Source of the DNA: Lepidodermella squamata
Lineage: Eukaryota > Animalia > Gastrotricha
Direction of reading: 5' to 3'
Assembly: GCA_047495785.1 (NCBI GenBank)
Contig: JBLDXI010000003.1
Span: 2,976,001-3,040,000, forward strand
Length of the DNA stretch: 64,000 nucleotides
Positions within the stretch are counted from its first letter, which is position 1. Every line of letters begins with the position of its first letter. The translations under genes and the position numbers were made by a program. Positions 7,751-49,670 of this stretch are shown one piece after another. The notes beneath the pieces are model-generated. The model had not been told where the DNA came from, made no database searches, and worked only from the letters and a program-made list of their open reading frames with translations.

Positions 7751-8101
7751 TTAAAGAAATAAGTACAATCCAACAAGGATGACTAACAGACCTAAACTAA
7801 ATATGACAATTGATAAAGCGCATAACGTTCTGCAACAACGTTGCCCGCACTTGGATGGGTCAGCCTGTGGAACTTCGCTTGCAGTTATCGTTGAATTTGC
7901 TAATTTCAATTCAGCTGCTATCGCATTTACGTAGTAGGAGTGACTTGGATCTATCGTTTCATAGCTCGGCGGCGGTTCCATATATCGCATTTCGATGCCA
8001 TATTGTGTCAAGTTAGTATCGATAGCCACATCTCCTTGCATTGTTGCCACGCGATGAGGTTCATTTGACACTGAAGCGAAATCATTGGCAAAATGTGACA
8101 T
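7751..8101 (-). CDS. PPxY tail-anchored membrane protein (array member 1)
   Basis: MSHFAND...EPPPSYETI...KCGQRCCRTLC followed by a C-terminal hydrophobic helix ALSIVIFSLGLLVILVGLYLFL*. Confidence 0.75.
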   Translation of the reverse strand: MSHFANDFASVSNEPHRVATMQGDVAIDTNLTQYGIEMRYMEPPPSYETIDPSHSYYVNAIAAELKLANSTITASEVPQADPSKCGQRCCRTLCALSIVIFSLGLLVILVGLYLFL

Positions 8102-8496
8102 TCCAGGTTGTTTAAAAGACTGTATCGTAGTCTCAGACTCTGAGTTTGGCTTCAAGCCGTAGGAGTAACATATTGAGAGATAAGCCTGGCAGTCTTAGTA
8201 GTTCATAGATAAGAAAAGGTACCAAGGTCGCCCTCGGCCATATCGCCCCAGTTCGTGAGTCATCACATGGAAAAATAGAGACATCAAGGTTAAAAAGGAG
8301 GTCTAACGTAACTCAAAACTGGCACTGCTGCTAATTACTATAACTATTTTTCGTTGATAAGAACGGCTTTTAGAACTGGTCTTGCCAATGTTCGTTGCAT
8401 TCAACGGAGATGTTGTCAATTAATTGGCCATGGCGTAGCCATGTAAAAACCATGTAAGACTCCTTTCATTAAGTAATAAGACTCTACATCTCAAGC

Positions 8497-9031
8497 ATGC
8501 ATTTTCAGGTTTTGCCAATTCGAATGAAAATGTTGGTGCTGGCAGCAATCACAGCACAAGTCTTCAACCACAATCTTGCAGGTAAAAATGCGTTTCAGAA
8601 CTGTAAATCATCGAAACTCTTGAATCTTCAAAGACGCGCTGATGTGTATTCAAGGGTCGTCTGGATCCACTTATGCGATGAGGATTTGCCATCCAAGCCA
8701 CTTTTACTGCATGGTAGCTTTTTGTCACAAGGACTGCTTTAAGCCTTCAATGATTTTTCTTTTGAATCAGAAAGCCGTAATAGGTTCCTATTATGTCAGA
8801 GATTGTGCCAGTGAATGTTTAACTATGTCTGTTGGTGCTCCTCTGAATAGCTCCGAAACAGTTAATTCAACTGATTCGAATGGCTCAGCTCCCCAGCAGT
8901 CATTCGCCAGACATTGCTGTAAATCGAACTTATGCAACTCGAGCGAGACTTCATCGCATTTTAACTCGATCATTCTGATCCTCATGCTTTCAATGGGATT
9001 TTTTGCGATCTCGAACCAAAAATGCGAATAG
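8497..9031 (+). CDS. Ly6/three-finger GPI-anchored protein 2 (exons ~8497-8581, 8634-8713, 8771-9031)
   Basis: Signal exon, ALMCIQG...C...YCM, YVRDCASEC...CCKSNLCN and a hydrophobic tail; same intron positions as the gene at 5231. Start codon uncertain. Confidence 0.82.
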
Positions 9032-9269
9032 ACTGTGGTTTTAACAATTTGAAATCAATGAAAACGTGCACCTTTAATAATTGTTAGTTTTTTCTCCTAA
9101 GAAGAGACTTTGAACAGCGGTGGTGTAGCTAATGTGCGCCGGTGTGACTCTTCAACGGCTTAACTGTTACATGTTACACGTGAGGCATACAGAGTGTGTC
9201 AATTAACTACCTTACTACTCACTATAACTAACTTTATGCGAACCTAATTTTATCTCTGTTAATCCCAAA

Positions 9270-9909
9270 ATGAATTCTTTTGTTATTCTGAAAGGGATAC
9301 GAATCCTTGCCCTGGCAGTTATCACTACAACCCTCCTTGAATATACAGGTGAAAGTTTGGTTTTAGTTTAATTAATATTCAGCTAATCGAATCATATTTT
9401 TACAGATGCCTTGATGTGTGTGGAAGGGTCGTCACACTTGCGGTTTAGAACGAAGACTTGCGAATCTGGCCAGCCGTATTGTATGGTAATTTGCCGCATC
9501 AATGCTCTAAGGACCCGGCTCATAACCAGTTAAAAATTCTTATTCTGAATTCGAGTCCTAATTTTTCATTTCCGGTGAATTTAAGACGTTATAGCCGTTC
9601 ATGAGCCGGATGGCTAGAGCATTGATGCTGGCCAAATTTCTCCTATTATATTCTTAAACGTAGAAAGCTGTCATTCAACAGTCATACATCGTGAAAGACT
9701 GTGCCATTCAATGCTCGGCAATTTCAATTGGTACGCAGAATAGTTCAGTTGCAGCTAATGGGACAAATTCAACTTCTCAATCGCCGTTCGCGAGATACTG
9801 CTGTAAATCGAACATGTGCAACTCCGGCAACATCTCATTGAATTTTTACCCGATTTTCGCTGTCATACTGTGCCTTACTCTGAAATTTTCGGTCGCAAAA
9901 CTTGGTTGA
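9270..9909 (+). CDS. Ly6/three-finger GPI-anchored protein 3 (exons 9270-9348, 9405-9485, 9664-9909)
   Basis: Paralog of the 8497 gene: ALMCVEG...CESGQPYCM, KDCAIQC...CCKSNMCN, hydrophobic tail. Confidence 0.85.
9487..9639. mobile_element. Small palindromic MITE-like insertion in Ly6-3 intron 2
   Basis: gcatcaatgctcta (9496) vs tagagcattgatgc (ends 9628), plus ccggctcat/atgagccgg; accounts for the enlarged intron relative to the paralog. Confidence 0.6.
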
Positions 9910-10076
9910 ACAATCAAGCTAAAGCTAAAATCCCAAATTTAACAAACAGCCATATTTTTGTACGCTGAGTTCATGGTCAATCGAATTCTAGGATTAATGT
10001 CACTTATTTTATCAACAGTAAAAGGACACTGATTGAAAATCATAGTTCAATTTTCTAATTTCAAAGGTGCAAAACT

Positions 10077-10305
10077 CTCAATCGAAAAACCATAAATTGA
10101 GCATCTTTTTTCTCTGGGACAATCTGGTTTGTTTGAGATGGGGCGATCTCATCGTAAGGTGGCCTTGAGACCAGTGCGCGAAGTAGGATTCTCGGTGGGC
10201 GGGGTCTCGGTTGGTGAAGGAATTGAACCGCTGCCAATAGTAAGTGCGTCTATCGAAGCCACGGGTATGGAAACATAAGCCGGAGGCAAAGATCGAGGCG
10301 GCTCG
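10077..10305 (-). pseudogene. Subfamily-A PPxY gene remnant
   Basis: EPPRSLPPAYVSIPVASIDAL matches the 11066/25434 copies, followed by an internal deletion/frameshift (PPYDEI out of frame); no intact TM or start exon seen. Confidence 0.75.
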
Positions 10306-11065
10306 CTACGAAGCAATATAGCACTGGTTTATGCTCGGTTAATTCTGTGGACACGTTGAAAGCTGACGTTATACACAGCAGAGACCTAGCTGCTTTAATC
10401 ATCTGAGATAAGGCATTTGATATGACCGTTGATAAGAAAGCACGCCCCGATTTAAGCTGTCACACCTGTCCGGCTAGCCGGCCAGTAATATTTTACCGCC
10501 AAAACAAGATTTTCAACTTTGATGGCATACCGAAGTTTTGATTCAGTGCGAATTATGAAAATGGCTGGCTCTGAATTAGGGATTGTTACATCCATGCACA
10601 CTATATTTAGGCTATTAAGAAGATTAAAACTAATTACTAATTTACTGTGCCCCTATTAATTGGGAAAACGACCCCCTTTTTCCAAAAATTGCCGAAAAAG
10701 CCGCCTTCTATAATTTGTACATTTTCGGCTCAAAATGCTCGATTCTCGATTTAACTAAGAGCTGGATCAAGAAGTCGTAACACTTCTCCAAACTCAACAT
10801 TTGTTGAAGTTCAATCGATCAACTTGCGAGGAATTCAGTAAGTTGGACAAGGTGATGCGGCTGTGGAAGGAGTATGAATCAACGGGTGTCAACATTTTTA
10901 AAATGACAATAAGCGACAATAAGCGACAATAAGCGAATATTGGTAATATTATTTCCTTTCATTTCAATGTTTAAAAAGATGATACAGCGCGGTTAAAATG
11001 AAAAAAAGTGTGTAAAATGAAAAAACACCCCTCGACTGCAATCGCCATAACTATAGTGAGACCCG

Positions 11066-11578
11066 TTAAGGGTTAATCTCTAAAACTATTGTTACTGCTG
11101 ACATAATAATTATAAATATAACAACAAAGGTCCATTGCAAAATTTTTTTACATCTATGTTTACAAGTGCTGTTTGAAGGCGGGTTGTCATCGACCAAAGC
11201 GTCCTCTGTAAACGGATTGATGACAACAGGATCTGCTGTAATACGATCGATCTCTTCTATCATAATTCGAGATACTTCCGGCGGAGTGGTTCGAGAGGAT
11301 CCAATCTCGTCGTAGGATGGTGGTGGTTGAAAAGCCCTGAGCTCAACATGATTCGCGGGAATGGTAATAGGACGATCGCTGCTGTAGGTCGGTGGAAGTG
11401 TCGATCCTGTTGGCGGAGCCTCGGCTGGTGGCGGGATCGAATCATTGCCAACAGCAAGTGCGTCTATCGAAGCCACGGGTATGGAAACATAAGCTGGCGG
11501 CAAAGACAATGTCTGGCTACAAAGCAAGAAAGACTGATTAGCCCCTCCGAGATCAAAGCTTTTGATTTACTTTTCCAT
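11066..11578 (-). CDS. Subfamily-A PPxY tail-anchored protein (exons 11578-11571, 11516-11066)
   Basis: 8-nt first exon ATGGAAAA|gtaaat; LPPAY, LPPTY and PPPSY motifs; CKHRCKK then a C-terminal TM. Confidence 0.85.
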
Positions 11579-17376: not shown

Positions 17377-20355
17377 CTAAACAGCTAAAATCGTAGGGAG
17401 TCGATCATCTGACGTTCGAATAGCCGGTAGAGGACCAGCGCCCAGAAGATGGTCAAGAAAGAAACGAACCGGCGATTTACTCTCCGGCATGGGCCTATCA
17501 CGACTCTGGCGAACTATTCCGCCTAGCACACTACCTGCTTCGAGCGCCCTGTTGAAACAATGGAACGACAAGCTGGACAAACGGTCTTGGATTACTTGGA
17601 AGTCGGGAAACGTCGCCTGCAGTCGCCGCTGATAAAGTTGATCCGGGCACCGACGGGGGAGCCCCAAGATGATCTTGAGGGCCCGCCTCTCTAGGACCGC
17701 CAGTGTTTCGATATACTGTGGCTTCGAGTTAGCGAACGCCGGAGCACCGAATTCTAACAACGGCCTGATTACGCTCTTGTAAAACAAGAGGCCCAAGGTG
17801 GGGTGGGTCTTGACTTTTCCGCGAAAAAGAGCGAAAATACGAGGGAGAGCTCGGGACGACACGTGTTGTAAGTGAGGCGTCCAGCATAGGTGCTTGGACA
17901 GCCAAACGCCCAGATATTTGAATTCCTGAACCCTTGGCAAGCAAATGCCGCCTAGCTGGAGCTGACCAGCTGTGTGATTTACATTGGCGCCGAATGCGAC
18001 CCACTCGCACTTCCTCGGGTTCAGGTCTAGTCTCCAACGCTGAGACCAGCGTTCTGTGACCCGAAGTGCCGCTTGGACACGAGCAGTTGCAAGTGGGGCC
18101 GGTCGCCCAGTAGCCCATACAGCCTGGTCGTCGGCGTATGCCGCCGCGGCAGTTCTCTTTAGTGCGTCGTCCTTGTCTACCTCCGCTGGGAGGGACGAAG
18201 ATGTGTAGATGATGAAGAGTATCGGGGATAATGGTGATCCCTGAGGGACTCCGCAAGCTACCTCGACATCCTCACTAAAGCTGTCCCCTACTCTGACTCG
18301 CATACGCCTGTCGCGTAGAAAATCGGATATCCATCGCACAACGGCCACGGGTAGGCCGAGGCCTTTTAAAACCATGCGTAAACCGTTGTGCCAAATGGAG
18401 TCGAAAGCTGCCTTGTAGTCCAGGAACGCCACAACAGTAGTTAATTTATCAGGTCTGCCCAACTCATCTTTATGCACGAACCCGTCTGTGATGTCATGCA
18501 TAAGTCTGAGGATGGCATCCAAGACTGACAGCCACTTCTGGAACCCGACTTGGCTTGGCGTCAAAATCTTGTTCCGCAAGCAGAACTCAAGAATGAACCC
18601 AGCCACGACGGCCTCCAGAAGCTTTGCCATGCAGCTGGTTAAGGAAACTGGCCTATACCCATCCAGGGACCGTGGGGATTTCCCCGCCTTGGGCACCGGT
18701 ACCACAATTCCAATTTTCCAAGCAGCTGGCAGATAGCCGGCGTTCAAAGATAAATTAAACAGGAGAAGGATAGCCTCTAGGAGAGGTGGGGGAGCGTTCT
18801 TAATCAACGGGTTGAGGATCCCATCTTCCCCGGGAGCTTTAAGCTTCAACCGGGCAAGCTGGGAGTTGAAGGCGTTCCTAGAAATCATGACGTCTAATTT
18901 ATCTGGTATTGTTAGAGAGGCATTGAGCTCCTCGTCTACCTCGCATGCTTGGTCGATCGAGTCCCAAAATTCTTGGTCCGCCTGGTGCGGTGAGCTACGA
19001 GGCGCGGCTTGGAACGTCGGCGCCCAATTTTCAGCAAAAACCCTCGCCTTCTCTGGGTTTGACGTCACCTTCGTCCCGTTCGCTAAGTCAAGGGTGGGGA
19101 TCACGCGTTGCGAGCCTTTCGATTCCCCCAAAATACGCTGTGCGTGTTGCCACGCCAGGGCAGCTTGCTGCGCCTGAAAAAGCTGTGCTATGTGGTTCAA
19201 CCGCCGCCGACATTTTTTATCCGCCTCTATCGCGACCTCTCGCGCCACCTGCCGTGTCGCAGCATTTAAAGCCGCTTTAGACGCAGCAGAGCGTTCGTTT
19301 CGATTTTTCCTGTCGCACCGATTCCTAGCTTCGATAGCCCGCTTTACAGCATGGCTGAGACGCACCTTAGGCAATTTAGCCACCGGCACACGAGCTAGCG
19401 TGGTTTTCGCGCTACTCGTTATTACCTCGGATATACTTGCGGCAAAGACGTCCAGCGCCCTAACCGAGTCCCCGCCTTTTGGGCGAACGACTGGCGCTAT
19501 CTTTTCCGCGCATACTCTCTGGTACTCAGGCCAGTCGGCGTTCAAAAAATCGAAACGAAGGTCCCGAGCGGCTGCCGGCACCGAGGCATTGGCCAACGGT
19601 GAACAGGAGTTCCGCTCCGGGAGCACGAGTGTGAGGCCCGCGATAGTGACGGCATGATCACTTCGATAGCAATCTAGAACAGCAGGCGCACGGTTGAAAC
19701 ACTTATCAGCAGCCAGTGAACTGAGCCATACATCTAAGACTCGAGACACGTTACCTTCCCTGAACCGCGTGGGAGCAGTTGGCGAGCTATGCAAAACCAC
19801 AGAGGAGGATTTTAGGTACTCCGAAAGAAGCCCCCCGCTTCCCGTTCGCTGAACGTTCCAGTCCGCGCAACCTAACTCTTCCGCCCAGGCGTTCAAGTCG
19901 CCAGCGAAGATCGAGTTTGTAGACGGATCACTCAAGACCTCTCTAATGAAAGATGTGTCTAATGGGCTATGTGAAGGATTGTACCCTGTGGCAATCGTAA
20001 GTCTCGCTGAGGCGTTGACTTCGCCTACTAGCAGCTCAACTGCAAGCCACTCGCCTCTAGAGGCTGGCGCAAACTTTACTTCGGCACAATCTAGTATTGG
20101 CTTTGACTGACTAATGAAGATTGCGACGCCGCCACAGTTTGGCCCGTACGCTCCTAATCTATCTACGCGGAAAGCAGTGTAGCCAGGGAGGTCGAATTGT
20201 TCGCCGAACTTCAGCCATGTCTCGTTTAAAAGAATGACATTAGGTCCATATTGCTCTATAATGTGGAGAAGTTCAGCTCTCTTCCCCTTGATGCCCTGGC
20301 AATTCCACTGGATTACGATGATTCTACTTTTTCTGAGTGTACTAAGACTAGGCAT
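17377..20355 (-). CDS. LINE ORF2: apurinic-type endonuclease + reverse transcriptase (992 aa)
   Basis: APE motifs QWNCQG, LNETWL, GGVAI, GDLNA, SDH; RT motifs KAPGEDG, YRPVSLTS, FLDYKAAFDSIWH, GVPQGSPLSP, YADD, KYLGV; no RNase H seen. Confidence 0.96.
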   Translation of the reverse strand: MPSLSTLRKSRIIVIQWNCQGIKGKRAELLHIIEQYGPNVILLNETWLKFGEQFDLPGYTAFRVDRLGAYGPNCGGVAIFISQSKPILDCAEVKFAPASRGEWLAVELLVGEVNASARLTIATGYNPSHSPLDTSFIREVLSDPSTNSIFAGDLNAWAEELGCADWNVQRTGSGGLLSEYLKSSSVVLHSSPTAPTRFREGNVSRVLDVWLSSLAADKCFNRAPAVLDCYRSDHAVTIAGLTLVLPERNSCSPLANASVPAAARDLRFDFLNADWPEYQRVCAEKIAPVVRPKGGDSVRALDVFAASISEVITSSAKTTLARVPVAKLPKVRLSHAVKRAIEARNRCDRKNRNERSAASKAALNAATRQVAREVAIEADKKCRRRLNHIAQLFQAQQAALAWQHAQRILGESKGSQRVIPTLDLANGTKVTSNPEKARVFAENWAPTFQAAPRSSPHQADQEFWDSIDQACEVDEELNASLTIPDKLDVMISRNAFNSQLARLKLKAPGEDGILNPLIKNAPPPLLEAILLLFNLSLNAGYLPAAWKIGIVVPVPKAGKSPRSLDGYRPVSLTSCMAKLLEAVVAGFILEFCLRNKILTPSQVGFQKWLSVLDAILRLMHDITDGFVHKDELGRPDKLTTVVAFLDYKAAFDSIWHNGLRMVLKGLGLPVAVVRWISDFLRDRRMRVRVGDSFSEDVEVACGVPQGSPLSPILFIIYTSSSLPAEVDKDDALKRTAAAAYADDQAVWATGRPAPLATARVQAALRVTERWSQRWRLDLNPRKCEWVAFGANVNHTAGQLQLGGICLPRVQEFKYLGVWLSKHLCWTPHLQHVSSRALPRIFALFRGKVKTHPTLGLLFYKSVIRPLLEFGAPAFANSKPQYIETLAVLERRALKIILGLPRRCPDQLYQRRLQATFPDFQVIQDRLSSLSFHCFNRALEAGSVLGGIVRQSRDRPMPESKSPVRFFLDHLLGAGPLPAIRTSDDRLPTILAV

Positions 20356-21430: not shown

Positions 21431-21948
21431 TTAAGCGGTATCAATTTCTAAAATTATTGCTACTGCTGAGATAAGAATTATAACTATAACAACAACGGTC
21501 CACTCCAAAATATGTTTACACTTATCTTTACAAGTGCTGCTTGAAGGGTTGTCATCACCCAAAGCGTTCGCCTGCGTAAACGGATTGATGACAACGGGAT
21601 CTGCTGTAACTCGATCGAGCTCTTCTATCATAATTCGAGAATTCACTTGTGTCGGAGTGGTTCGAGAGGATTCAATCTCGTCGTAGGATGGTGGCGGTTG
21701 AAAAGCCCTCATTCAAGCTCATTCGAGTGATTAGTCAGGGGAAGATCGCTGCTGTAGGTCGGTGGAAGTGTCGATCCTGTTGGCGGAGCCTCGGCTGGTG
21801 GCGGAATCGAATCATTGCCAACAGCAAGTGCGTCTATCGAAGCCACGAATATGGAAACGTAAGAAGGAGGCAATGACAATGTCTGGCTACAAAGCAAGAA
21901 AGACTGATAGGCCCTTCCGAGATCAAAGCTTTTGATTTACTTTTCCAT
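21431..21948 (-). pseudogene. Subfamily-A PPxY gene with a 1-bp frameshift at ~21710
   Basis: Close paralog of the 11066 gene; ...GAG CTT GAA TGA with RAFQPPPSY...TM continuing in a shifted frame. Confidence 0.78.
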
Positions 21949-23416: not shown

Positions 23417-23904
23417 CTATGCCAGTTCTACAATTAGTGTCACTGCTGCAGAAGCAAGTAAAACTACAAAAACGACTATGCAAATTGCGATTTTGATGCA
23501 TTTGTCTTCAGAAGGGCTGCTACCAAGTTCGCCCTGTGTGAATGGATTAACGACAACGGGTTCTCTAACTCGGCTGGCGAACTCGATCACAGTGCGAGCA
23601 TTGGCTTGACTCGGAGGCACTTGCGTCACATTGTAGGATGGCGGTGGTTCAAAAACTCGAAGTTCAAAATGATTCACGCTATTAGTAATTGGATGATCGT
23701 TGCTGTAGGTCGGTGGAAGTGTCGATCCTGTGGGCGGAGCCTCGGCTGGTGGCGGAATCGAGTCATTGCCAATAATAATAGCGTCTGTTGCAGCCACGGG
23801 TATTGAAACATAAGCAGGAGGCAAAGACCGAGGCTCGCTAAAAAGCAATAAGCACTCATGCTTATTTTAGATTCTAGATCGAAACTGTAACATTACTTGT
23901 CCAT
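23417..23904 (-). CDS. Subfamily-A PPxY tail-anchored protein
   Basis: 8-nt first exon ATGGACAA|gtaatg; LPPAY, LPPTY and PPPSY; DKCIK then a C-terminal TM. Confidence 0.85.
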
Positions 23905-24977: not shown

Positions 24978-25192
24978 TTAGAATGTAACGATACCTAATA
25001 TTACGATTGTGATTATAGCCAAAATTATTATAGCCATTAAGCCTATAACGCAATACTTTTTCCTTTGATAGTTTCACTCGAACCACGGCAACCTAGATGC
25101 TTGAATGGTCGCAGCCTCTTGCGGAGTAATAACCCGGCTTTCGATTGCTTCGTTATTTCAGTAACGAACCCTAGATCAGGTGAATGAACTTG
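24978..25192 (-). pseudogene. Internally deleted copy of the 26495 (subfamily-B) gene
   Basis: TM-coding end and exon-1 sequence (ttcagtaacgaaccctagatcaggtgaatgaacttga) are directly fused; the PY-coding middle is missing. Confidence 0.8.
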
Positions 25193-25433
25193 ACTGCCGC
25201 ACCTTTTAATCGTGGTGCGATTGTGACTGATTAGCGGTTCGATAGCTGGAATCTTACAGACGTGTTGCTTTCAGTTTTATAGCAATTTAGCATGCCGGCG
25301 GAAATTCTAGGCTACCGCGAGGCGCGAGAGAACCCAGGATACTTTCCAGGTTATTTTTCATTTCAAATCTCGAGCCAACATTTTTCGATAATTTAATCTG
25401 ATATCGGATGAAATTCAAAGCTTTATGCGAAAT

Positions 25434-25933
25434 TCATATATCCAGTTCAACAATTAGTGTCACTGCTGTAGAAACAAGTAAAACTACAAAAACAACAAAG
25501 CCAATTGCAATTTTCTCGCATTTGTCTTTACAAGGGCTGCTTGGACTGGAATTGAGACCAAATTCGCCCTGTGTGATGGATTAACGACAACGGGTTCTCT
25601 AACTTGGCTGGCAAACTCTTCGATCATATTTCGAGCATTAGCTTGACTTGGAGGAGTCTCGTTGTAGGATGGTGGTGGTTCAAAAACCCTGAGTTCAACA
25701 TGATTCGCGGGAATGGTAATTGGACGATCGATGCTGTAGGTAGGTGGAAGTGTTGATCCTGTGGGCGGAGCCTCGGCTGGAGGCGGAATTGAATCATTGC
25801 CAATAGCAGGAACGTCTGTTGTAGCCACGGGTATGGAAACATAAGCTGGAGGCAGAGACCGAGGCGGCTCGCTACAAAGCAATAAAAACCCTCAGGCTGA
25901 TCCAAGATCGAAGGCAGAAAATTACTTTTCCAT
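25434..25933 (-). pseudogene. Subfamily-A PPxY gene with a 1-bp deletion at ~25577
   Basis: NPFTQG of the 23417 paralog reads AAT CCA TC ACA CAG; the TM (EKIAIGFVVFVVLLVSTAVTLIVELDI*) lies in the shifted frame. Confidence 0.78.
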
Positions 25934-26994: not shown

Positions 26995-27199
26995 AGTAAA
27001 GCTCAACAAAAGAAACAAGCTAATGCTGGTTACCGCTATCACTTAGTTTTATGATAAGGCGTCTAGTTTGAGATAAAACCCCGCTTTTGCAACTACATCG
27101 ATTCATGATGGTCGGAAAAGGGTCAAATTGTTTATTCAACTCAAGCAAGCCAAATCAAGTGATTAGTCATCTTATGATTTACAAATATGGATCTTTTGC

Positions 27200-27606: not shown

Positions 27607-27680
27607 GATGAATTCACTTGTGAGTGATAAAGCTCTATTTAAATTCTAGGAAATAAATTCACAAATCAAATCTTGAACAT

Positions 27681-31102: not shown

Positions 31103-31527
31103 TCAGTCTGCATAGATTACCAAATAAGCACCGCTAAATGCTATCGCAAGGACAATCAAGACCACTGCAACGAAGCATTTGAACCTCTTGAAGCGTCTTT
31201 CGGCAATATACGCCGTAGTTGAAGCAGCTGTTCGTGATGTGCTCTCGATTGAATCTGAGGCCATGCGGTAGTCACGTGGCATCGGCTGTTGAATGGTTAT
31301 TACATTGTCGAAGTAAGACGGAGGAGGTTCAATGCTGATGCTTGGAATTGAAATCGAATCACTGTAATTCAAATAGTTTAAAGATAATTGAGCTAATTTT
31401 CAAACCACTTTTAATTATCCACCTTAAGAATCTTAGAAAGTTCTATTACTGACCTGTAAGGAATTGGGTCGCCGTAGCTGTGTGTCGACGTTGCGTCATA
31501 AGGTGGCGGCAAGTTGCTCAGCTCCAT
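31103..31527 (-). CDS. PPxY tail-anchored protein (exons 31527-31454, ~31362-31103)
   Basis: MELSNLPPPYD...EPPPSYFDN...RRFKRFKC then a C-terminal TM. Confidence 0.85.
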
Positions 31528-31757: not shown

Positions 31758-31979
31758 TCACTTGAGGCAGCATCCGATGCATGATCCAATGCATTCGACT
31801 ATGTTGCAGATCAGTAAGCAGCAGTCTGCGCAGCATATAACATTTTCGCAGCAATCCGTACTGCGTGGCTGACTGTGATCATTCGCAACGACAACAACCG
31901 TATTAGGCGCTGTCTGGTAGGAGGCGTCGAAATGCAGAGCGGGAGGTTCTTCCGTTTGAGGTTGCTTCTCCAGACTCAT
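31758..31979 (-). CDS. Small CYSTM-like protein with a Cys-rich C-terminal tail
   Basis: Polar N-terminus, then DCCENVICCADCCLLICNIVECIGSCIGCCLK*; splice acceptor just upstream of the ATG. Confidence 0.7.
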   Translation of the reverse strand: MSLEKQPQTEEPPALHFDASYQTAPNTVVVVANDHSQPRSTDCCENVICCADCCLLICNIVECIGSCIGCCLK

Positions 31980-34426: not shown

Positions 34427-34864
34427 TTAGCTGAAACGAAATAAGTGGCCCGTAATGGCAAGAACAGTCAATAAAGTCACCATCATTACAATAAAAATTA
34501 TCCACAAAAATCTACATTGTGACATGAATTTTTCCCTCACGATGACTGCTGGTTGAAAGGTGTTGTTAAAGTTAACTCGGAAGCCACGAAGTTGGTCCAA
34601 CGTTGGAACTGACACAACGTTGTGATGAACGCTGAACACGCGATAAGACAACGCTAATTGAGCTTGAAATCTGGAACCGCGGTCTCGACGTTGACTGGAC
34701 GGAGTCTCGCTGATAGAACTGACGCCAGAACTTGAGTAATCAACCGAGTAGTTCCTCGCCTGTAAAGATTGCCGAATCAGGGTCACAGGGTCGATGACTG
34801 CTCGGTAACCAGCGGCTGTAACTTGATCTTCATCGTCCTCCGAATTAAAATGGATGTTTGACAT
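34427..34864 (-). CDS. Tail-anchored array member with a degenerate PY motif
   Basis: TAAGYRAVIDPVTLIRQ...AQLALSYR aligns with PPPAYTAIDPVPIIRQ...AEIAFSYR of the 47390 gene; QCR then a C-terminal TM. Confidence 0.72.
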   Translation of the reverse strand: MSNIHFNSEDDEDQVTAAGYRAVIDPVTLIRQSLQARNYSVDYSSSGVSSISETPSSQRRDRGSRFQAQLALSYRVFSVHHNVVSVPTLDQLRGFRVNFNNTFQPAVIVREKFMSQCRFLWIIFIVMMVTLLTVLAITGHLFRFS

Positions 34865-35199: not shown

Positions 35200-35848
35200 T
35201 CAATTATAACTAATGACTACCACGACTATGAAAATCCCGACCATAACTATGAAAATAAACCACAAGAACACCTTGCATCCATTACAATCGCTTTGCTCTT
35301 CTTCCGCACGTCCGTGGAGACTTGTCGAACTGCGGGCATTGTTGTTGCGATCTCGGCTGTTGGACGACGATTGCGCATTGTTTCTGGCGTTAGCTACCCG
35401 CATTTCACGCTGAATATTTTCGCGGACTTCACGCCGCATGGCTGCTTCGAGGTCCCGCCGAATATCAGCCTCGATTTGACGCCGCAAAGTTGCCTCGATC
35501 TGACGCCGCATAGTTATCTCGCTTTGACGGTTTGATGGTGTTACATGCGGAACATGGGGCGGATAAGCAGCCGATGAAGCCGTTACAACGGCCGCCGAGT
35601 TGTTGTTGTATCTGACAGACGGAGTGTTGGCCTGATTCGGCTGTCTAATGACCACAACCGTAGAGCCATCTGCTGAATAAGCCGGGGGTGGTTCCGGAAT
35701 GACATTGCTTATAGGAATAGCCACATGACTTTGCCCAAGATGATCGCTGTGGTATGGCGGCGGTAGTGAGCTTTCCCTAAAATAATTGAAAATGTATCAA
35801 AATCCAGAAAAAGCTCAAGTTAACTTACGCTGATAAATCATTCGTCAT
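35200..35848 (-). CDS. Subfamily-C PPxY tail-anchored protein with a short coiled-coil (20-nt first exon)
   Basis: MTNDLSAESSLPPPY...EPPPAY; RRQIEA repeats; DCNGCK then a C-terminal TM. Confidence 0.86.
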
Positions 35849-36299: not shown

Positions 36300-36576
36300 G
36301 ATGAACTCATTGGGAATTTCTTGAAGGTTTAAGAATCTGATCTCCTGCTGGCCGATGGCTGGTGGCTATTACGATGGCTATTACGGCAATCGCGTCGTCT
36401 GCAGAATAAGCAGGGGGTGACTCTGGTATTACACTTCTACTGCTATTGCAACGTGATTTTTCCGAAGTTGTCAGTAAGGCGGGTGGAGAAAATAATCTGT
36501 AATATAATTACATATATCAAGTTCGCAATCGAATTCGCAATCAACGGGGAACTTACGCCGATAAATCATCTGTCAT
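36300..36576 (-). pseudogene. Degenerate subfamily-C-like copy
   Basis: MTDDLSA first exon, HVAIAVE then frameshifted PESPPAYSADD; truncated, no TM. Confidence 0.7.
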
Positions 36577-37524: not shown

Positions 37525-37718
37525 CCAGGCACAGACCTGGCAAAAGGAAATGCCTTTCGGCGAGGGTATCGATTTTTATTGTGATTGCGTATATGCCGAC
37601 TCTAAAGCTTCGATTATTAAGAAATATAACGTTTATTTGTAGCATAATATCATCTTGTCGCAGGGTTGCAATAAGTCAAAAATGGTCATTAGGATGACTC
37701 GGAAAGACTGTACAACTA

Positions 37719-38295
37719 TTAGATAAGTACCATGACTGCGATAACCACGACTACAATGAAGAGAACAAAGCAAAAGAACACCTTGCATCCATTGCAATCG
37801 CATTGTTGACCTTCCTCAGCACCGTGATGACTTGACGGTGTCGAACTGGGGCCATTATTGTTGCAATGTCGGCTGTTAGAAGACGGTTGGGCTACCAGCA
37901 TTTCAATCCGCATAGCTGCTTCGAGTTCCCGCCGAATTTCTGCCTCGCATTGACGCCACATAACTGCCTCGATTCCACGGCTTGATGGTGTTACATACGG
38001 AACATGGGGCGGGTAAGCAGCCGATGAAGCCATTAGAACGGTCGCTGAATTGTTGTATCTGACAGACGGAGTGTTGGCCTGATTCGGCTGTCTAATGACC
38101 ACAACCGTAGAGCCATCTGCTGAATAAGCCGGGGGTGGTTCCGGAATGACATTGCTTATAGGAATAGCCACATGACTTTGCCCAAGATGATCGCTGTGGT
38201 ATGGCGGCGGTAGTGAGCTTTCCCTAAAATAATTGAAAATGTATCAAATCCTAGAAAAAGCTCAAGTTAACTTACGCTGATAAATCATTCGTCAT
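37719..38295 (-). CDS. Subfamily-C PPxY tail-anchored protein (recent duplicate of 35200)
   Basis: First exon, intron and N-terminal half nearly identical to the 35200 gene; CDCNGCK then TM. Confidence 0.86.
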
Positions 38296-38884: not shown

Positions 38885-39290
38885 ATAAGCCATTTCGCAT
38901 TACTCCTAGATCTGGCCATCTCGATTATAACGATCATAGCGACGAAACCGATGAAAAAACAGATATTAGAACAGCGGCTACAACACAGTACGCTTTATCT
39001 CTAATTGTTGACGCTTCCTCTTCGTTGAGACCATTTGAAATCACGGCTGTAATTTGGGATTTCGTGACATGGTTGCGCGTCAAAGTGCTCATGGTGTCTA
39101 TGATCTCCAAAGCTATAAACTAGTGACGTAGTGTTGCTCGTATAGCTCTGGTGTTACACTTTCAACTGCTATTGCGACATGATTTTGCCGAATATGGCCA
39201 TAGGGTGGAGGAAATGATCTGTTTCACAATTAGGAATATCAAGTTCGCAATCGAATTCACAATCAATGCTGAGCTTTGATCGTCTGCCAT
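38885..39290 (-). pseudogene. Degenerate subfamily-C-like copy (a further fragment at ~39990-40125)
   Basis: Same intron motif aagttcgcaatcgaattc.caatcaa as the 36.5-kb copy; HVAIAVESVTPE then loss of the PY and an in-frame stop; residual TM-coding sequence. Confidence 0.62.
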
Positions 39291-40182
39291 CACGACGATG
39301 TATCATGCCGTGTTCTACGTATTACGGCCAAGTTAAACTCTGCAGGACATTTTTGGAAATAGCGAACAAATCAAGCTGGGCGCTGGGCACGGTACTATTC
39401 CTAGGCTGAATAAGCGTAAAAATGATAGAGTCATCTGGGAACAATTTTGTACGTGCAGATCGAACTCGCTCAATTTGGGCGATTTCGGACTATACCAATT
39501 CGAGGATTTTACTTTGAAACGCGTTGAAGAGCGTGACCTAAAGAGAAAACGTGTGAGGGTGACAAATCACGTCCTTAAATTGTGTTGTCGATAGGTATGA
39601 AGAGAAATAATCATAAATAATATGCCATATGCCTACTTTGCGAAGCTACCCAGCCGGAGCCAAGCTTAAGAGTATTGAAATTGAGCGAGTTTAGGTTCAG
39701 AAGTGACGTTTTTATGCAAATTTTGAAGTTAAGGACACAGGTTTTCAATTTTTGCTTTTTAAAACTCGAGCAGCTGTGGCGAGGATTTAGCTCATGAGAT
39801 TTTGTGAGCTTACTGACATGAGTTCTGTCCTGAAGGACATGAGTTTAGGACCAGAAGATGAGCCCGGGGAACCTCATGGCTAAGGAATAGTGTTCGAAGG
39901 AAGCCGACAATTTTTATGCATAGCAAGGTAACCTTACCCTAAGTATTTTACGCCAATCAGAATTTATTTTTACGGTCATTTCACATAATTTTGAAATCTT
40001 GTGATCGGGATTGCATCGATGAAACGATGAAACTGATAAGAAAAAAAGACATTAGAATGAGGGCTACAGCTTCGTTTCTCTTCGCTGGGGCTGACGCTTC
40101 CTCTTCGTTTAGACCATTTGAGCTACGATCGCTGCCCACACTTCGGCGGCTATGATTTAGAATTTATTATAAATGTTTTTTT

Positions 40183-40686
40183 TTACAATAAGTTTTCAAT
40201 CGCAGCAAGAACAAAGAATATTACGGAACCCAGAAAAATCAAAACCACTGCAACCACTCTCCAACCCGAACCTCCGCCTCATTCTTCGACTTGATTATCA
40301 CGGCTGTGGGGGTCATGCCATCTCTGATCTTCGCATAAAACTCTCACTTGATTGTTAGAGGTGCTTTGTCTACTTGTATTGCGTGAATCCCGTGATAGTT
40401 GGCGATATTGGTACTGCGATGATGCATTGGCGTTGAATTGAAGCCCAAAATCTTTGCTACTCTGGATAGGTTGCACTATTGTTGGCACTGGGCTAATAGT
40501 GGAATAGGCTGGCGGTGGTTCGGGGTTTACATTTCCAACAGGAATCTGTGCGGAATGCCAAGGTGCTGTGCCGTACGAAGCGGATGATGTTCTGAGGAAG
40601 AATTGCCATCAAATGAAAAAACAAAGGCGTGTAACAAATATTTTTTCTTACAATGCAGAACTAGCAGTGTTACCGTGGTTTGCCAT
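40183..40686 (-). pseudogene. Subfamily-D PPxY gene with an in-frame TGA (40281-40279) before the TM
   Basis: EPPPAYSTI...QVEE*GGGSGWRVVAVVLIFLGSVIFFVLAAIENLL; paralogs read ECGGGSGCK / ECGDGGCK. Confidence 0.75.
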
Positions 40687-41266: not shown

Positions 41267-41855
41267 TCACAGGTTGGTTACGGAACCTGAAGCGATAGCT
41301 ATAATGCACGCAACAGCAAGCAACACTACAGCTACGTTTTTGCACACATGTTTCCTATGACAGCTTTCATCATGGTAACTATTGCGGCTGTGATGATCAG
41401 GTAATCTTTGATCTTCGCAAATGATTCTCACTTGATTGTTAGATGGCATTTGACTCGGAGCTGAACAGAAATCGAGAGTCCCGTTTGCTGCTGCAACAGG
41501 AGTGTTACCCCGGCTCAGTTGCGCTATTGTTGGAACTGGCCATCTCGGGGAATAAGCTGGCGGCGGTTCGGGAGTAACAAGTGCAACGGGAATCCGAGCA
41601 GAATCCCCCTGTGCCGTGCCGTAGCTAGGAGGTTTGGGATATGATGTTCTTATGGAAAATTAATTTCTTATTAACAATAGAAGGAATTGTCAATCAAAAT
41701 ATTCCTACAATGCAGAACTATCAGAGGTTTCGTTGTAAGGAGGTGGTGCTGTGGGAGCCGTTCTGAGACAGAATTTCAATTAAGTTAACCAAATCATGGT
41801 GCTAAAAGCAAAATCCTTACAATGCAGAACTATCGAAAGAGCCGCTATTCGCCAT
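41267..41855 (-). CDS. Subfamily-E PTAP/PPxY tail-anchored protein, 3 exons (extra exon 41762-41709)
   Basis: MANSGSFDSSAL-TAPTAPPPYNETSDSSAL-TSYPKPPSY...EPPPAY...CHRKHVCK then TM. Confidence 0.83.
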
Positions 41856-43148: not shown

Positions 43149-43672
43149 TTACAAGGTTCCGATTGAAGCTAGAACAATTATTACTAGGGCACCCAGGAAA
43201 AACAAAACCATAAACAGCGCTTTGCAGCCTGATCCTCCTCCGCATTCGTCATGATGATCATGATGGTGATGGCTGTGCAACCTCCGATCTTCGCAAACAA
43301 CTCTCACTTCATGATGACAGTTAGTTTGCCTAGTCCTATAATCGCTAGATAATTGACGATATTGGTACTGCGATGATATGTTCGAATTGAACTGAAGTCC
43401 AAAATCTCTTTCGTATGGCTGAAGAGGGACTCTTGAAGCTCTGGCATTCTGGCTTGGCTGCGCTATGGTCGGTACTGGAAAAGAGGAATAAGCTGGCGGT
43501 GGTTCGGGGATTACATTTTCAACGGGAATCTGAGCAGAATTCCAAGGTGCCGTGCCGTATCCAGGAGGTGTGTAGGATGATGTTCTGAGCAAATATTGCT
43601 AAGATTATTTAGTTCGAATCAAAATGAAGAATCTTACAATGCTGAAGTATTAAAGGAGCTGGGGTTTGCCAT
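43149..43672 (-). CDS. Subfamily-D PPxY tail-anchored protein
   Basis: MANPSSFNTSAL first exon; TPPGY and EPPPAY; HSHHHHDHHDECGGGSGCK then TM. Confidence 0.86.
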
Positions 43673-44632: not shown

Positions 44633-45223
44633 TTACTCGTCGGTAGCAGTTCCAACAGCAAAGCCTAAAATGCACGCAACAACAAGCAACACCATGGCTA
44701 TGGTTTTGCATATAAATTTTCTATTGCAGCTTTCATCATGGTTACTATTGTGGCTGTGATGATCAGACCAACTCTGATCTTCGCAAACGATTCTCACTTG
44801 ATTGTTAGATGGCATTTGACTTGGAGCTGAACAGAAATTGAGAGTCCTGTTAGCTGCTGCCACAGGACTGTTATCCCGGCTCGGTTGCGCTATTGTCGGA
44901 ACTGGCCAAATCACGGAATAAGCTGGCGGCGGTTCGGGAGTTACAAGTGCAACGGGAATCCGAGCAGAATCCCACTGTGCCGTGCCGTAGCTAGGAGGTT
45001 TGGGAGATGATGTTCTGATGACAAATTAATTTCGTATTAACAATAGAAGGAATATTGTCAATCGAAATATTCTTACAATGCAGAACTATCAGAGGTTTCG
45101 TCGTAAGGAGGTGGTGCTGTAGGAGCCGTTCTGAGAAAGAATTTTAATTAAATTAACTAAATCATGGTGCTAAAAGCAAAATTCTTACAATGCAGAACTA
45201 TCGAAGGAGCCGCTATTCGCCAT
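44633..45223 (-). CDS. Subfamily-E PTAP/PPxY tail-anchored protein, 3 exons (extra exon 45130-45077)
   Basis: Duplicate of the 41267 gene, 3368 bp away: TAPTAPPPYDET, KPPSY, EPPPAY, CNRKFICK then TM. Confidence 0.83.
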
Positions 45224-45617: not shown

Positions 45618-46322
45618 TTACAAATTCCCGATCGCTGCAAGAACAATTATAATTACGGCACCCAAGAAAAACAAAACCATGAACAGCACTTTGCAGCCTC
45701 CATCACCGCATTCTTCATCGTGATGATGATGGCTATGCAATCTCTGATCTTCGCAAACAACTCTCACTTCATGATGACAGTTCGTTTGCCTTGTCGTATG
45801 ACGTGTATCTCGTGATGATTGCCGGTATTGATACGGCGACGATGAATTGCTGGTGTGCTGTACCTCGCCATTTCTTTCGGAAGGTTGGGAACGGGGGCTT
45901 CTGCCTCTTCTTCCCGAACTGCTGTTACCTCGGCTTGGCTGTGCTGTTGTTGGCCGGATTGGGCCGGAGCTCCTTGAAGTTCCGCTTGATAATTGGCGAT
46001 ATTGATACTGTGCTGATCTATTCAGCCCAAAATCTCTTTCGTATGGCTGGAGACGGGTGCTTGAAGTTCTGCCTGGCGCCGAAGGTCTGGTATTCCGGCT
46101 TGGCTGTGCTATGGTTGGAATTGGATAAATAGTTGAATAAGCTGGAGGTGGTTCGGGAATGACATTTTCAACAGGAATCTGATCAGAATTCCAAGACGCC
46201 GCGCCGTAGGAAGGGGGTGTCGGGGATGATGTTCTGAGCAAAAATTGCCATTAAATTGGCTAAGTCATTCAAAACGAAGAGTCTTACAGTGCAGAACTAT
46301 CGAAGGAGCTGGGGTTCGCCAT
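45618..46322 (-). CDS. Subfamily-D PPxY/PSAP tail-anchored protein with an internal duplication
   Basis: TPPSY, EPPPAY and PSAP; two copies of PT.AQPSR...QP.ER...YQYRQ; HSHHHHDEECGDGGCK then TM. Confidence 0.86.
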
Positions 46323-47345: not shown

Positions 47346-47389
47346 AAAAGTCATCTGAAAAGTGATTTATTGAAAACGATATGGTGCTT

Positions 47390-47882
47390 TCATCTATACA
47401 CAGCACCGAAAACTATCACTATTACGGCGCAAATAAAGCAGAAAACAAGCAGCATTATTCTCAAGCCTTGTTTCTGATGAGGAGTGTAGCCTTCATTCAG
47501 CCTTGGATTGTGATGGCTATTCCTAGCTAATTCTTCAATTCTCTCGATTCTCTCCAAATTCTCGAGATAGGCGCGGTAGGAGAAAGCTATTTCAGCCTGA
47601 TCTCCAACCTGTGAAGTTCTGGAACTCGCTGGAAAATTGATCGGATGATCAGCGCCATCAATCGGCTGCCTTATGATAGGAACAGGATCGATTGCTGTAT
47701 AAGCCGGGGGAGGCTCAGGAATCACATTGCCAATTACTATCGAATTAACTGCTGCATCTGCAGGTGGGCCACTGTAAGGTGGAGGTAGCGATATGGTACT
47801 AAAAATTCAAAATTAAAGCGGTTATAAAAGATCGTTTTGAAGACTTATACAGGTCGAAATTGGTCGTGGTGTGGCTTGACAT
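47390..47882 (-). CDS. PPxY tail-anchored protein (32-nt first exon)
   Basis: MSSHTTTNFDLTISLPPPY...EPPPAYTAI...; C-terminal TM IMLLVFCFICAVIVIVFGAVYR*. Confidence 0.85.
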
Positions 47883-48018
47883 GTTTTAGTGTACAGGAAA
47901 CCATTATTGGCATAAAAATACAAGACTGTTAGTATCAGAATACTGTGGAGATAAATGATAAGAGTTCACTTAAGTTTCTGATAAAAAATGATTAATCATA
48001 ACCTCATTTTCCGTTTTA

Positions 48019-48538
48019 TTATTGCCCTGACCCTGTACTATTCCCCGGCATAGTGTTAACTGCCGGACTGTCTGGCACGACAGAAGTGCCCTTTTCATAG
48101 ACGACAACCACCCCGAATCCGAGGGCAAGAAAAACGCCTAGAAAAATGCCGACGGCAAATAGGACCATGTAAGACCTAGACAGCCATTTGCATCGGCTGC
48201 GGCGTTGATACTTCGGCCTACGAGGTGGGGGCACAGCAGCGAGGGCTTTCCTAACGAATTCGCTGTCCTTTGATAGCAAATGCTCCACGGTTATGTGGCG
48301 AGGCTTTCGAGGTACAAGGAACAGTTGTTTGATCACGGCGATTTCCCGCCAATCCACTCGGCCGTTTGTTTGTAGGACTGGAGTGATAACTATACTGACA
48401 ATCAAAATGTCAAGACCAAATTAGGAATTTCAAATAGGGGTAAGGTCTGTACCTTGGATTGTTGGCTGAAAGAGATGGATGGATGATTATTAGGTGCTGT
48501 TTCGCAGGCCGAAGCTCTTCCCCGGATTCCATCAGCAT
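48019..48538 (-). CDS. Single-pass type II/tail-anchored protein, 2 exons (phase-2 intron)
   Basis: MLMESGEE...NNPS|IVITPV...PPPRRPKY...RCKWL, TM, then a short luminal tail with an NST sequon. Confidence 0.62.
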
Positions 48539-49361
48539 GGCCTAGTGGGAAATTCATCAAAAATAGGCTGGCTTTAAGCCATCCGTAGTAGTTAATCAAG
48601 AATAATTTTGCGTGACATAAGGCCATTCAAGGAATGATTGCGAATCGTCCTTTGTGGGCACGTGAGTTGTAAAACGAATTAGTGACCAGGCTGAAGTCTT
48701 CAAAAAGAGTTTAATCCAACATCTGGTTACGGAGATTTAGTTTGGAATTTTCAATTGGCCCAAAACTAATTTTCGAAGCGTTGAAGTATGTCATAATTGA
48801 TCAGCATAATTCAAAGTCATTTATCTTCAAATTCAGCGTGAAATTTCTGTAAAAGATTCATTATTCACTATGGATTTCATACAGCGCCCTAATTTCGTAG
48901 AAATATTCGAAAAGCGACTCTTTTCTTATTTAAAATCAGGTTCCGCGATATGCAGATTTGGTTCCGCTAAAAGATATTCTGATTTAGTTATGGGAAACTT
49001 ATATGCCAAGTTGGCACCATAAATGTAAGGTAAAAGTGACAAATTTGAAGTTACAGCATTTGATTTCCCTAAACTATATTGGGTTTTCGAGCTACAAGTT
49101 CGCCATCAAAGCTCAGTTTAGATTCAAGATTCATTCCTCAGCTTGCCGAGCCGATTCCAGTATTAAAATCGTGGTTTTTCTGATATCAGAAGCTTGGAAG
49201 CCAACATTGACAAGTTATTTTACGAACTACCTGAGGTTCCAGAAAAATCTCAAGGTGCCAGAAACTGTATTTAAAAAAACTGCTAGAAATATTTGAAAAA
49301 TATCTGAAAAATATAAAAACTTGCATTTATTTATGAATACATATCAGCCATTCATTTCAAA

Positions 49362-49670
49362 TCACAAATCGCCTTGGCAAATGATCAAAAAGTTTGCGCA
49401 TAAGCAGCAACAGCCGGAAATAGCTGAGCCTAGCAATACAAAGTAGCTGCAACAGTTTCCGGAGGGGTCGTTTTTACTCTTCGCAATCACGTAATAATTC
49501 CCAGCCGAACTATTCATTTCCAGTAAATGATCTCGCCTCTCAAGGGACAAGCTGTCGAAAGGTCAAAACCGAGTATTAGGCAACCTTTGTTTATTAAGTT
49601 GAAATATTCCTTACTCCTCAGTTGCTATGAGCGGACTGGATGACTCTGTCTGCAGCAAATAATTTTCCAT
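49362..49670 (-). CDS. Second CYSTM-like small protein, 2 exons (phase-2 intron)
   Basis: MENYLLQTE...ED|LSLERR...GNCCSYFVLLGSAISGCCCLCANFLIICQGDL*. Confidence 0.68.

Follow-up and report, generated by a model that had tools for sequence, protein, structure and literature searches.

Locus organization

The window analysed here (G000:C3:2976001-3040000, the whole stretch of 64,000 nucleotides) comes from the 121 Mb, 151-contig assembly of the gastrotrich Lepidodermella squamata and holds a tandem array of small genes whose products combine PPxY motifs (PY motifs) with a single transmembrane (TM) helix at the extreme C-terminus. The array spans 7.7-49.7 kb of the window and all of its approximately 29 units lie on the - strand. 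A sequence-only reading of this DNA had described a same-strand array of small PPxY tail-anchored proteins, and strand-specific counts confirmed this description. Among stop-to-stop frames of at least 50 amino acids (aa) in the window, a hydrophobic helix at the end was found in 20 frames on the - strand and three on the + strand, while [PL]PxY together with a terminal hydrophobic helix was found in 15 and none, respectively. For the strict pattern PP.Y, the - strand gave 42 occurrences, of which 40 fall within 7.7-49.7 kb, and the + strand gave two.

All-against-all BLASTP and tblastn comparisons, with remnants read in three frames, gave a tally of 14 intact genes with PPxY and a C-terminal TM, eight broken copies, one PPxY gene without a TM, four TM genes without PPxY and two open reading frames (ORFs) with Cys-rich tails, which is close to the earlier estimate of about 18 intact, eight disrupted and two Cys-tail genes. 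A genome-wide profile search added only two members, at G000:C7:1015085-1015462 and, 91 kb upstream on the same contig as the array, at G000:C3:2885043-2885480; the gene model of one dispersed paralogue, L034, is ambiguous. The intact members of the array are listed first, followed by the variant members; the cDNA evidence is described in the next section.

7751..8101, - strand: g07751, intact; one EPPPSY, Cys-rich juxtamembrane patch, C-terminal TM; start codon uncertain
11066..11578, - strand: g11066, subfamily A, 152 aa; three PY, NPF, patch CKHRCKK, TM; exon 1 11578-11571, predicted intron of 54 nt, exon 2 from 11516
23417..23904, - strand: g23417, subfamily A, 142 aa; three PY, NPF, TM; predicted intron of 59 nt
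26495..26994, - strand: g26495, 147 aa; PPAY, LPSY, TM; cDNA contig over exon 2
27112..27606, - strand: g27200, 119 aa; PPSY, PPDY, TM; cDNA-confirmed intron 27555-27601 (47 nt); poly(A) site near 27112
27681..28103, - strand: g27681, 123 aa; LPPAY, LPPSY, patch HRRKRKR, TM; cDNA-confirmed intron 28033-28083 (51 nt)
31103..31527, - strand: g31103, 110 aa; LPPPY in exon 1, EPPPSY in exon 2, TM; cDNA-confirmed intron 31362-31453 (92 nt)
35200..35848, - strand: g35200, 198 aa; LPPPY, EPPPAY, Arg-rich stretch, patch CNGCK, TM; predicted intron of 52 nt
37719..38295, - strand: g37719, 174 aa; recent duplicate of g35200
41267..41855, - strand: g41267, 138 aa; PPSY, EPPPAY, His/Cys patch, TM; predicted intron of 172 nt
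43149..43672, - strand: g43149, 156 aa; PPGY, EPPPAY, His run, patch CGGGSGCK, TM; predicted intron of 53 nt
44633..45223, - strand: g44633, 138 aa; close paralogue of g41267
45618..46322, - strand: g45618, 216 aa; PPSY, EPPPAY, one PSAP, TM
47390..47882, - strand: g47390, 146 aa; LPPPY, EPPPAY, TM; predicted intron of 52 nt

28465..28719, - strand: PPPY ORF without TM, transcribed; truncated or soluble variant
28973..29299, - strand: tail-anchored ORF without PY; cDNA cover almost nil
29537..29950, - strand: tail-anchored ORF without PY, transcribed (cDNA contig 29504-29927); not lysine-poor
34427..34864, - strand: tail-anchored member, PY decayed to AAGY; IDPVxxIRQ kept; lysine-poor
48019..48405, - strand: doubtful member; one non-terminal TM, no PY
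31758..31979, - strand: Cys-tail member; PY site decayed, 13 Cys in the last 32 residues replace the TM; cDNA very weak
49362..49562, - strand: second Cys-tail ORF

Transcription and gene structure

Expression data came from one public cDNA run (X1, 2015), whose contigs carry loose ends of SMART-oligo and poly(T) sequence. These contigs were compared with 26.3-32.2 kb of the window, that is, with eight of the approximately 29 units; the group of related genes referred to here as the B clade, which includes g35200 and g47390, lies outside this stretch. Transcription, on which the sequence-only reading depended, was detected for six of the eight genes examined (g26495, g27200, g27681, the ORFs at 28465 and 29537, and g31103), with the deepest cDNA cover over g27200. 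The 28973 and 31758 ORFs had next to no cover and the DNA between the genes was bare of X1 cDNA.

Two cDNA joints have CT..AC ends, corresponding to GT..AG on the - strand, and a third intron fits a loose end at 27556. In the three cDNA-backed genes (g27200, g27681 and g31103), the intron joins a tiny, ATG-bearing first exon to the main exon, and extension of this exon logic gave complete ATG-to-stop models for 13 genes. The splice-aware annotation proposed in the earlier reading altered its gene models, since most genes are not single ORFs and begin with a tiny ATG exon and a short intron. The length of the first exon was 2 mod 3, equivalent to a phase-2 intron, in all 13 models (three verified by cDNA and ten predicted). 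Common descent of the family is argued by this intron phase because it is shared across subfamilies that are hardly alignable. These array genes are host genes, being spliced, polyadenylated and equipped with their own promoters.

Protein design and motifs

The modelled proteins are 110-216 aa long. In the 14 models, the N-termini are hydrophilic and have no signal peptide, and the TM ends 0-5 residues before the C-terminus, with the residues after it mostly not basic. These TM helices are very hydrophobic (mean Kyte-Doolittle 2.5-3.6), the rest of the sequence is hydrophilic, and the 12 residues before the TM contain Lys or Arg in 13 of 14 proteins and Cys in 11 of 14. The design sketched in the sequence-only reading, with no signal peptide, one C-terminal TM, a basic/Cys juxtamembrane patch and barely alignable subfamilies, is thus upheld; the mean column identity of the 14-member alignment is 24%. 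Secreted or cuticle proline/tyrosine-rich proteins were also considered, and were rejected on account of the absence of a signal peptide and the C-terminal position of the sole hydrophobic segment. In tail-anchored proteins, a very hydrophobic TM and a short, non-basic tail lead to the endoplasmic reticulum (ER) and secretory pathway and away from mitochondria. By these rules, the sequences point to a destination of the family members in the ER/secretory pathway and not in mitochondria.

A total of 29 [LP]PxY motifs was found in the 14 proteins, usually laid out as (S)LPPxY (PY1) followed, 23-25 residues on in most members, by EPPPxY (PY2). The only invariant columns of the alignment are P, P and Y of PY2, and one P of PY1 is nearly invariant. 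The PY motif is therefore the sole family-wide invariant, so that its conservation among paralogues exceeds the background; a lack of such conservation had been named in the sequence-only reading as a refutation. Within the B clade and the two dispersed paralogues, both PY motifs are invariant, as are a V, an E, an I and a Q. A third short element follows PY2, roughly PVPxI(R/A)QP with invariant I and Q (in the B clade, e.g. g47390 and g35200, and in L020 and L034), and survives in the 34427 ORF despite the decayed PY site. There was no conserved late-domain motif other than PY in the family; PSAP occurs once, in one member.

In the AlphaFold2 model built for g47390, residues 1-67 form coil with a low predicted local distance difference test (pLDDT) score, residues 68-92 a helix of low confidence and residues 106-134 of 135 the terminal helix, which is confident (pLDDT 84-95). 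Both LPPxY and EPPPxY sit in the low-pLDDT coil, as expected of class-I WW ligands, and the N-terminal part is predicted to be cytosolic and disordered. Several B-clade members (43149-43672, 45618-46322, 41267-41855 and 44633-45223) carry a run of His and a pair of Cys immediately ahead of the TM (e.g. HSHHHHD...C...C-K), which could be a metal-binding or palmitoylation patch.

A lysine desert in the cytosolic domain

The cytosolic parts of the proteins are nearly free of lysine, a feature new to this analysis and beyond the sequence-only reading. Excluding the ten residues before the TM, the 14 proteins contain five Lys (0.31%) and 99 Arg (6.1%) in 1,631 residues, against an expected Lys content of approximately 3.6% from the base composition of the same exons and 5.7% in other ORFs of the window (binomial p ~1e-25 for a reference Lys rate of 4.5%). 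Outside the juxtamembrane patch, ten of the 14 proteins are devoid of Lys, with Lys-free stretches of 78-184 residues; in g45618, for example, 184 cytosolic residues include 21 Arg and not a single Lys, and the Lys of g35200 is confined to its patch. The juxtamembrane 12-mers (168 residues) hold 20 Lys and 16 Arg. When ORFs were read directly, the dispersed paralogues L020 and L034 proved nearly free of Lys except in the juxtamembrane patch. The 29537 ORF, a unit lacking PY, was not lysine-poor, and the 34427 ORF, with its PY decayed to AAGY, was. These are the marks of a lysine desert: a long, disordered, Lys-free stretch that is conserved among relatives and in which Arg is tolerated. Disordered proteins of the ubiquitin system have been reported to show an enrichment of lysine deserts (PMC10169902).

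A rather unlikely reading of this layout is that the PPxY proteins are themselves clients, in which the PY motifs and the juxtamembrane Lys would form a self-signal for NEDD4-type ubiquitination at one site. The ubiquitinated protein would then go to multivesicular bodies, lysosomes or extracellular vesicles, or have its half-life set, and any effector function would lie in the TM and juxtamembrane part. Both Sna3 and IFITM3 work as PY-bearing, self-sorted clients. Lys packed beside the membrane and absent elsewhere is what would be expected of one designated acceptor site, although five of the 14 proteins have a single juxtamembrane Lys and basic residues in this position are equally predicted by the positive-inside rule. 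Residue Y+3 is I, L or F in 11 of the 29 PY motifs (background 19%), giving overlapping PPxY and YxxPhi endocytic signals such as occur in IFITM3 and ENaC, and NPF is kept in subfamily A. The Cys near the TM, small size, tandem arrangement and fast evolution recall IFITMs, but a CD225 domain is missing. Two PY motifs at a fixed spacing of approximately 24 residues exceed the needs of a degron, and paired motifs fit the multi-PY ligase activation described for Ndfip (PMC12720080).

Relationship to known families and systems

Pfam hmmscan of ten and then 14 members (E up to 1, then 10) gave matches that were all sub-threshold, scattered and TM-driven, and no family matched more than one member. 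Herpes_UL56 (PF04534) was unmatched in both scans, and the matches of the 14 members included neither an NDFIP-named family nor LITAF (PF10601). The best match to CD225 (PF04505) had E = 0.18 in one member (12.1 bits, the cut-off being 27.1). Neither g45618 nor g27200 retrieved a relative in word-indexed homology searches. An exact look-up of five ORFs in a protein collection found none, the proteins of the host genome probably not being in that collection. A 14-member profile searched with HMMER against 1.84 billion representative proteins gave a sole match (E = 1.3e-4), a repeat protein of 1,324 aa that was judged a coincidence of motif and no relative because of its repeated 'GTLPPEYSxWT' units. 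The scans of Joint Genome Institute (JGI) metagenome and IMG/VR viral contigs were seeded with a B-clade alignment, the 14-member alignment being too variable as a seed, and yielded pattern matches, none of which was confirmed by tblastn. Full-text searching of the literature on tail-anchored PPxY proteins yielded herpesvirus adaptors and LITAF, and no cellular family of the same design was found in this way. As far as databases reach, the PPxY tail-anchored family is lineage-specific and is filed under no named family; the profile search and Pfam agree here with the sequence-only reading, which recognized none.

When two different members were compared by language-model features, the nearest named cluster was Herpes_UL56 (0.84 and 0.87) and the nearest overall an unnamed, mostly nematode cluster (0.86 and 0.92). 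These neighbours are only leads on architecture and are silent on homology. The class compared comprises herpesvirus UL56 (PF04534), varicella-zoster virus (VZV) ORF0, human cytomegalovirus (HCMV) UL42 and its murine counterpart (MCMV) m42, and U24 of human herpesviruses 6 and 7 (HHV-6/7). The tail-anchored PY proteins of herpesviruses use their PY motifs to bind Itch and Nedd4, act as adaptors and are barely similar in sequence (PMC5849660). The UL56 protein of HSV-1 (herpes simplex virus 1) is tail-anchored with three PPxY and no lysine, its homologues in equine herpesvirus (EHV) carry few lysines, or none, on their cytoplasmic side, and it has been proposed to be a catalytic scaffold that can be reused to deliver NEDD4-family ligases to clients, GOPC being an example (PMC7539533). 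The array proteins share with this class the lack of a signal peptide, an N-terminal domain that is cytosolic and disordered and one TM at the very C-terminus, as well as one to three PPxY motifs, few or no cytoplasmic Lys and members that can barely be aligned (PMC5849660, PMC7539533). They differ in being encoded by cellular, spliced genes with GATA-rich promoters in approximately 29 tandem units and in keeping juxtamembrane Lys, with no PF04534 match and no relative in IMG/VR. The likeness to UL56, UL42 and U24 noted in the sequence-only reading therefore holds and is strengthened by the near lysine-free cytosolic domain. The family has every architectural trait of the UL56 class that was tested and fails the sequence test for every named family.

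Three cellular systems offer partial parallels. Ndfip proteins, which are conserved across animals, contain three TM helices. Unlike Ndfip, the array proteins have one terminal TM, no homologue detected outside the genome and massive tandem duplication. They resemble Ndfip1/Ndfip2, Bsd2, Tre1/2, Ear1, Ssh4 and Sna3 in being small membrane proteins with several cytosolic PY motifs; Ndfip/Bsd2-type adaptors recruit WW-HECT ligases to endomembranes and activate them, for which multiple PY motifs are required (PMC12720080, PMC5892558, PMC5849660). The array also resembles IFITM genes as a small, tandem, fast-evolving cluster whose products have an overlap of PPxY and YxxPhi in the cytosolic N-terminus, juxtamembrane Cys and a terminal TM. 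Members of the IFITM/CD225 group are small proteins of fast-evolving, lineage-specific tandem clusters, with a PPxY overlapping YxxPhi in the cytosolic N-terminus, palmitoylatable Cys near the membrane and a C-terminal TM whose luminal tail is very short. In CD225 proteins there are two hydrophobic segments as well as an intracellular loop that is conserved, whereas the array proteins have a single hydrophobic segment. A proline-rich, PPxY-bearing N-terminus and a Cys-flanked, C-terminal hydrophobic anchor are shared with LITAF/SIMPLE and CDIP1 (PF10601), in which the N-terminal PPxY (and PSAP) binds NEDD4-family ligases (PMC5095921, PMC5142333). However, LITAF is monotopic, with zinc-binding CxxC ... 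HxCxxC on both sides of the hydrophobic stretch, while the TM of the array proteins ends the protein.

Evolution and regulation

Pairwise ratios of non-synonymous to synonymous substitution rates (dN/dS) were 0.21-0.76, with dS of 0.17-1.0. Together with the eight pseudogenes listed here, this indicates continuing birth and death of copies and bears out the fast evolution supposed in the sequence-only reading.

10038..10402, - strand: broken subfamily-A copy; SLPPAY kept; stop, no TM
21431..21948, - strand: subfamily-A copy; frameshift near 21712
24984..25300, - strand: decayed copy of g26495; in-frame stop and internal loss
25484..25933, - strand: subfamily-A copy with three PY; TM removed by frameshift
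36307..36507, - strand: remnant of a g35200-like copy
38934..39223, - strand: frameshifted remnant; PPPY piece and TM piece
39914..40163, - strand: remnant; juxtamembrane and TM piece only
40189..40686, - strand: g43149-like copy; in-frame TGA, first PY lost

The linker and TM evolve almost freely, with a ratio of non-synonymous to synonymous differences per site (pN/pS) of 0.45-1.4. These least constrained parts are the supposed carriers of function if the proteins are clients, which speaks against that reading. In close pairs, the PY region is low in both synonymous and non-synonymous divergence. For example, the first 65 aligned codons of g37719 and g35200 differ by one synonymous and no amino-acid change, and pS in this pair is 0.02 in the PY region and 0.24 in the linker. 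Across the close paralogues (35200-35848/37719-38295 and 41267-41855/44633-45223), pS is 0.02-0.08 in the PY region and 0.24 in the rest of the gene. The 5' part has therefore been homogenized by gene conversion or duplicated later (mosaic duplication). The invariance of PPxY between subfamilies, at saturated dS, is not affected by such homogenization.

A second run (X2), of DNA and coded as another organism, covers the same stretch with 2-3% differences. Among the strain variants listed, which are a subset of all variants, 12 synonymous and eight to nine non-synonymous changes fall in coding exons, which is far from the ratio of approximately 1:3 expected without constraint. The PPxY family is under purifying selection. 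At 26672-26934, an X2 DNA contig skips 261 bases within and upstream of g26495, pointing to a structural variant by which the strains differ.

In the 200 nt upstream of 13 start codons, 33 WGATAR sites were found with approximately 7.6 expected (about fourfold enrichment), a count reached in none of 2,000 resamplings, the paralogues being non-independent samples in this statistic. The 3' flanks of the same 13 genes hold five sites and exons 0.43 per 200 nt. GATA sites are present in every subfamily although the promoters do not align by eye (e.g. 27607-27806 and 43673-43872). The family is probably driven by a GATA factor, a class of regulators that control gut and immune genes in many invertebrates.

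These data also bear on the highly improbable alternative that the array is non-functional, made of chance ORFs or a decaying family in which PPxY is no more than proline-rich low-complexity sequence. Pseudogenes do make up eight of the approximately 29 units, dN/dS reaches 0.76 in some pairs and no orthologue was found outside the genome by homology, profile or metagenome searches. Chance or decay is nevertheless contradicted by spliced and polyadenylated transcripts with a conserved intron phase, the synonymous excess among strain variants, PY columns that are invariant against a background of 24%, the strong statistical signal of Lys avoidance and a GATA enrichment limited to promoters.

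Genomic setting

The array is flanked by ordinary animal genes: an Hsp20/alpha-crystallin exon (6899-7294, - strand), identified as Hsp20 by Pfam, adjoins the first family member, and other flanking ORFs were judged by eye to be tetraspanin-, Sushi-, kringle- and astacin-like. The possibility that the array derives from a virus or endogenous virus was rejected in view of the conserved spliceosomal introns and these host-gene neighbours. One non-member has been inserted in the array.

17377..20355, - strand: ORF of a retrotransposon of the long interspersed nuclear element (LINE) type, with endonuclease and reverse transcriptase

This ORF of 992 aa looks intact and is locally GC-rich (50-55%). 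A further fragment at 36908-37378 (- strand) was recognized by eye as reverse transcriptase and lies alongside the family remnant at 36307-36507. On the + strand, ORFs at 8642-9031 and 9691-9909 end in 'CCKSN(L/M)CNS' followed by a hydrophobic tail and recall Ly6/uPAR-type glycosylphosphatidylinositol-anchored proteins; a Pfam scan of the 8642-9031 ORF gave no match. The neighbouring ORFs at 12686-12964 and 13367-13792 (both - strand) share a similar segment (...ATP(T/A)F(S/F)C(F/S)IVK...LTA(E/K)LFA...) and are probably a repeated element unrelated to the PPxY family.

Candidate ligase partners and proposed role

The genome contains 19 WW matches, several of them outside HECT genes, and 23 HECT matches. 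At least three loci have WW domains directly upstream of HECT, as in NEDD4-family ligases, with four WW on C13 (G000:C13:1135666-1137672), three on C1 (640821-642794) and two on C38 (474837-477280). The C13 ligase is a Su(dx)/WWP1 orthologue, no more than 60% identical to any named protein, whose best named matches are from a brachiopod and molluscs, so that the host is probably a spiralian from a poorly sampled group. Because WW-HECT ligases are encoded, the usual readers of LPPxY and PPPxY are present in the animal. A complex prediction for WW1-4 of the Su(dx)/WWP1-like ligase with the first 50 exon-2 residues of g35200 scored 0.01 and was counted neither way.

With about even confidence, we read the PPxY family as ubiquitination-resistant membrane scaffolds for NEDD4-family ligases, which would make it a cellular analogue of UL56, UL42, U24 and Ndfip. 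From the shared architecture, we infer that the family would be a functional analogue, and not a sequence relative, of these proteins and of Bsd2. The proteins would be inserted post-translationally into ER-derived membranes, where the Cys patch may be palmitoylated. Their paired PY motifs would dock the tandem WW domains of NEDD4-family HECT ligases (the Su(dx)/WWP1-like enzyme and two others), and this docking may relieve ligase autoinhibition. The docked ligase would ubiquitinate neighbouring membrane or membrane-associated clients, leading to their sorting or degradation, while the scaffold, having no Lys outside the juxtamembrane patch, would be largely spared and could act repeatedly. 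The variable linker and TM may select different clients or compartments, and such selection would account for the expansion in tandem as well as for copy turnover.

The WW matches outside HECT genes are compatible with another, unlikely role, that of membrane tethers or decoys that present no client. Such proteins would hold non-HECT WW proteins (WWOX-, Kibra/WWC-, MAGI- or BAG3-like) or would sequester or down-regulate NEDD4-type ligases, and a decoy could restrict retroelements or viruses that depend on PPxY for budding. A lysine desert would be as fitting for a stable decoy as for a scaffold, but nothing points to a particular WW partner, and a diversified array of at least 14 paralogues is not needed for a decoy. 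The motifs of the array moreover resemble classic NEDD4-family ligands, which are LPPxY and PPPxY preceded by an acidic residue. In favour of this role, herpesviral tail-anchored PY proteins reduce the level of Itch and interfere with virus-like particle formation (PMC5849660).

Several points weigh against a role as ligase scaffolds. Binding to WW domains is predicted from the motifs, and PPxY can also mark its own protein for degradation or sorting and binds non-HECT WW proteins. Four TM genes of the array have no PY motif. The expression evidence covers only eight of the approximately 29 units and comes from the contigs of a single cDNA run. Conservation was seen within one genome and near-identical strains, with no second-species orthologue found, and gene conversion explains part of the similarity of the PY region between close paralogues, so that conservation in such pairs overstates selection. 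Of the sequence-only proposal of a ubiquitin-ligase adaptor repertoire, the real, lineage-specific and fast-evolving host genes thus stand, while an adaptor function is suggested by analogy.

A wider and distinctly unlikely extension of the scaffold reading is that the host uses the array as a diversifying repertoire, under GATA control, of 'degrader' scaffolds that are not themselves degradable, with each paralogue steering NEDD4-type ligases to a different membrane client. Clients could include proteins of viruses or retroelements that bud by PPxY, and the system would then serve innate defence or surface remodelling on the principle of UL56. Host genes of this kind could also be the source from which viral UL56-like adaptors were captured.

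Membrane adaptors set the targets of NEDD4-family ligases, and a genome has only a few of the known cellular kinds (Ndfip, arrestin-related proteins and the yeast Bsd2 group). If the family does act as ligase scaffolds, the tail-anchored, multi-PY, lysine-free scaffold would be no viral invention, and cells would have reached the same solution. Lysine deserts would then be a sequence signature by which ligase adaptors could be found without homology to known ones, and the family would provide a natural variant series, with the same docking module and different linkers and TMs, for questions of client choice. Should the proposed function be wrong, the locus would still be a clean, young orphan family undergoing birth-and-death evolution in which only short linear motifs are held constant.

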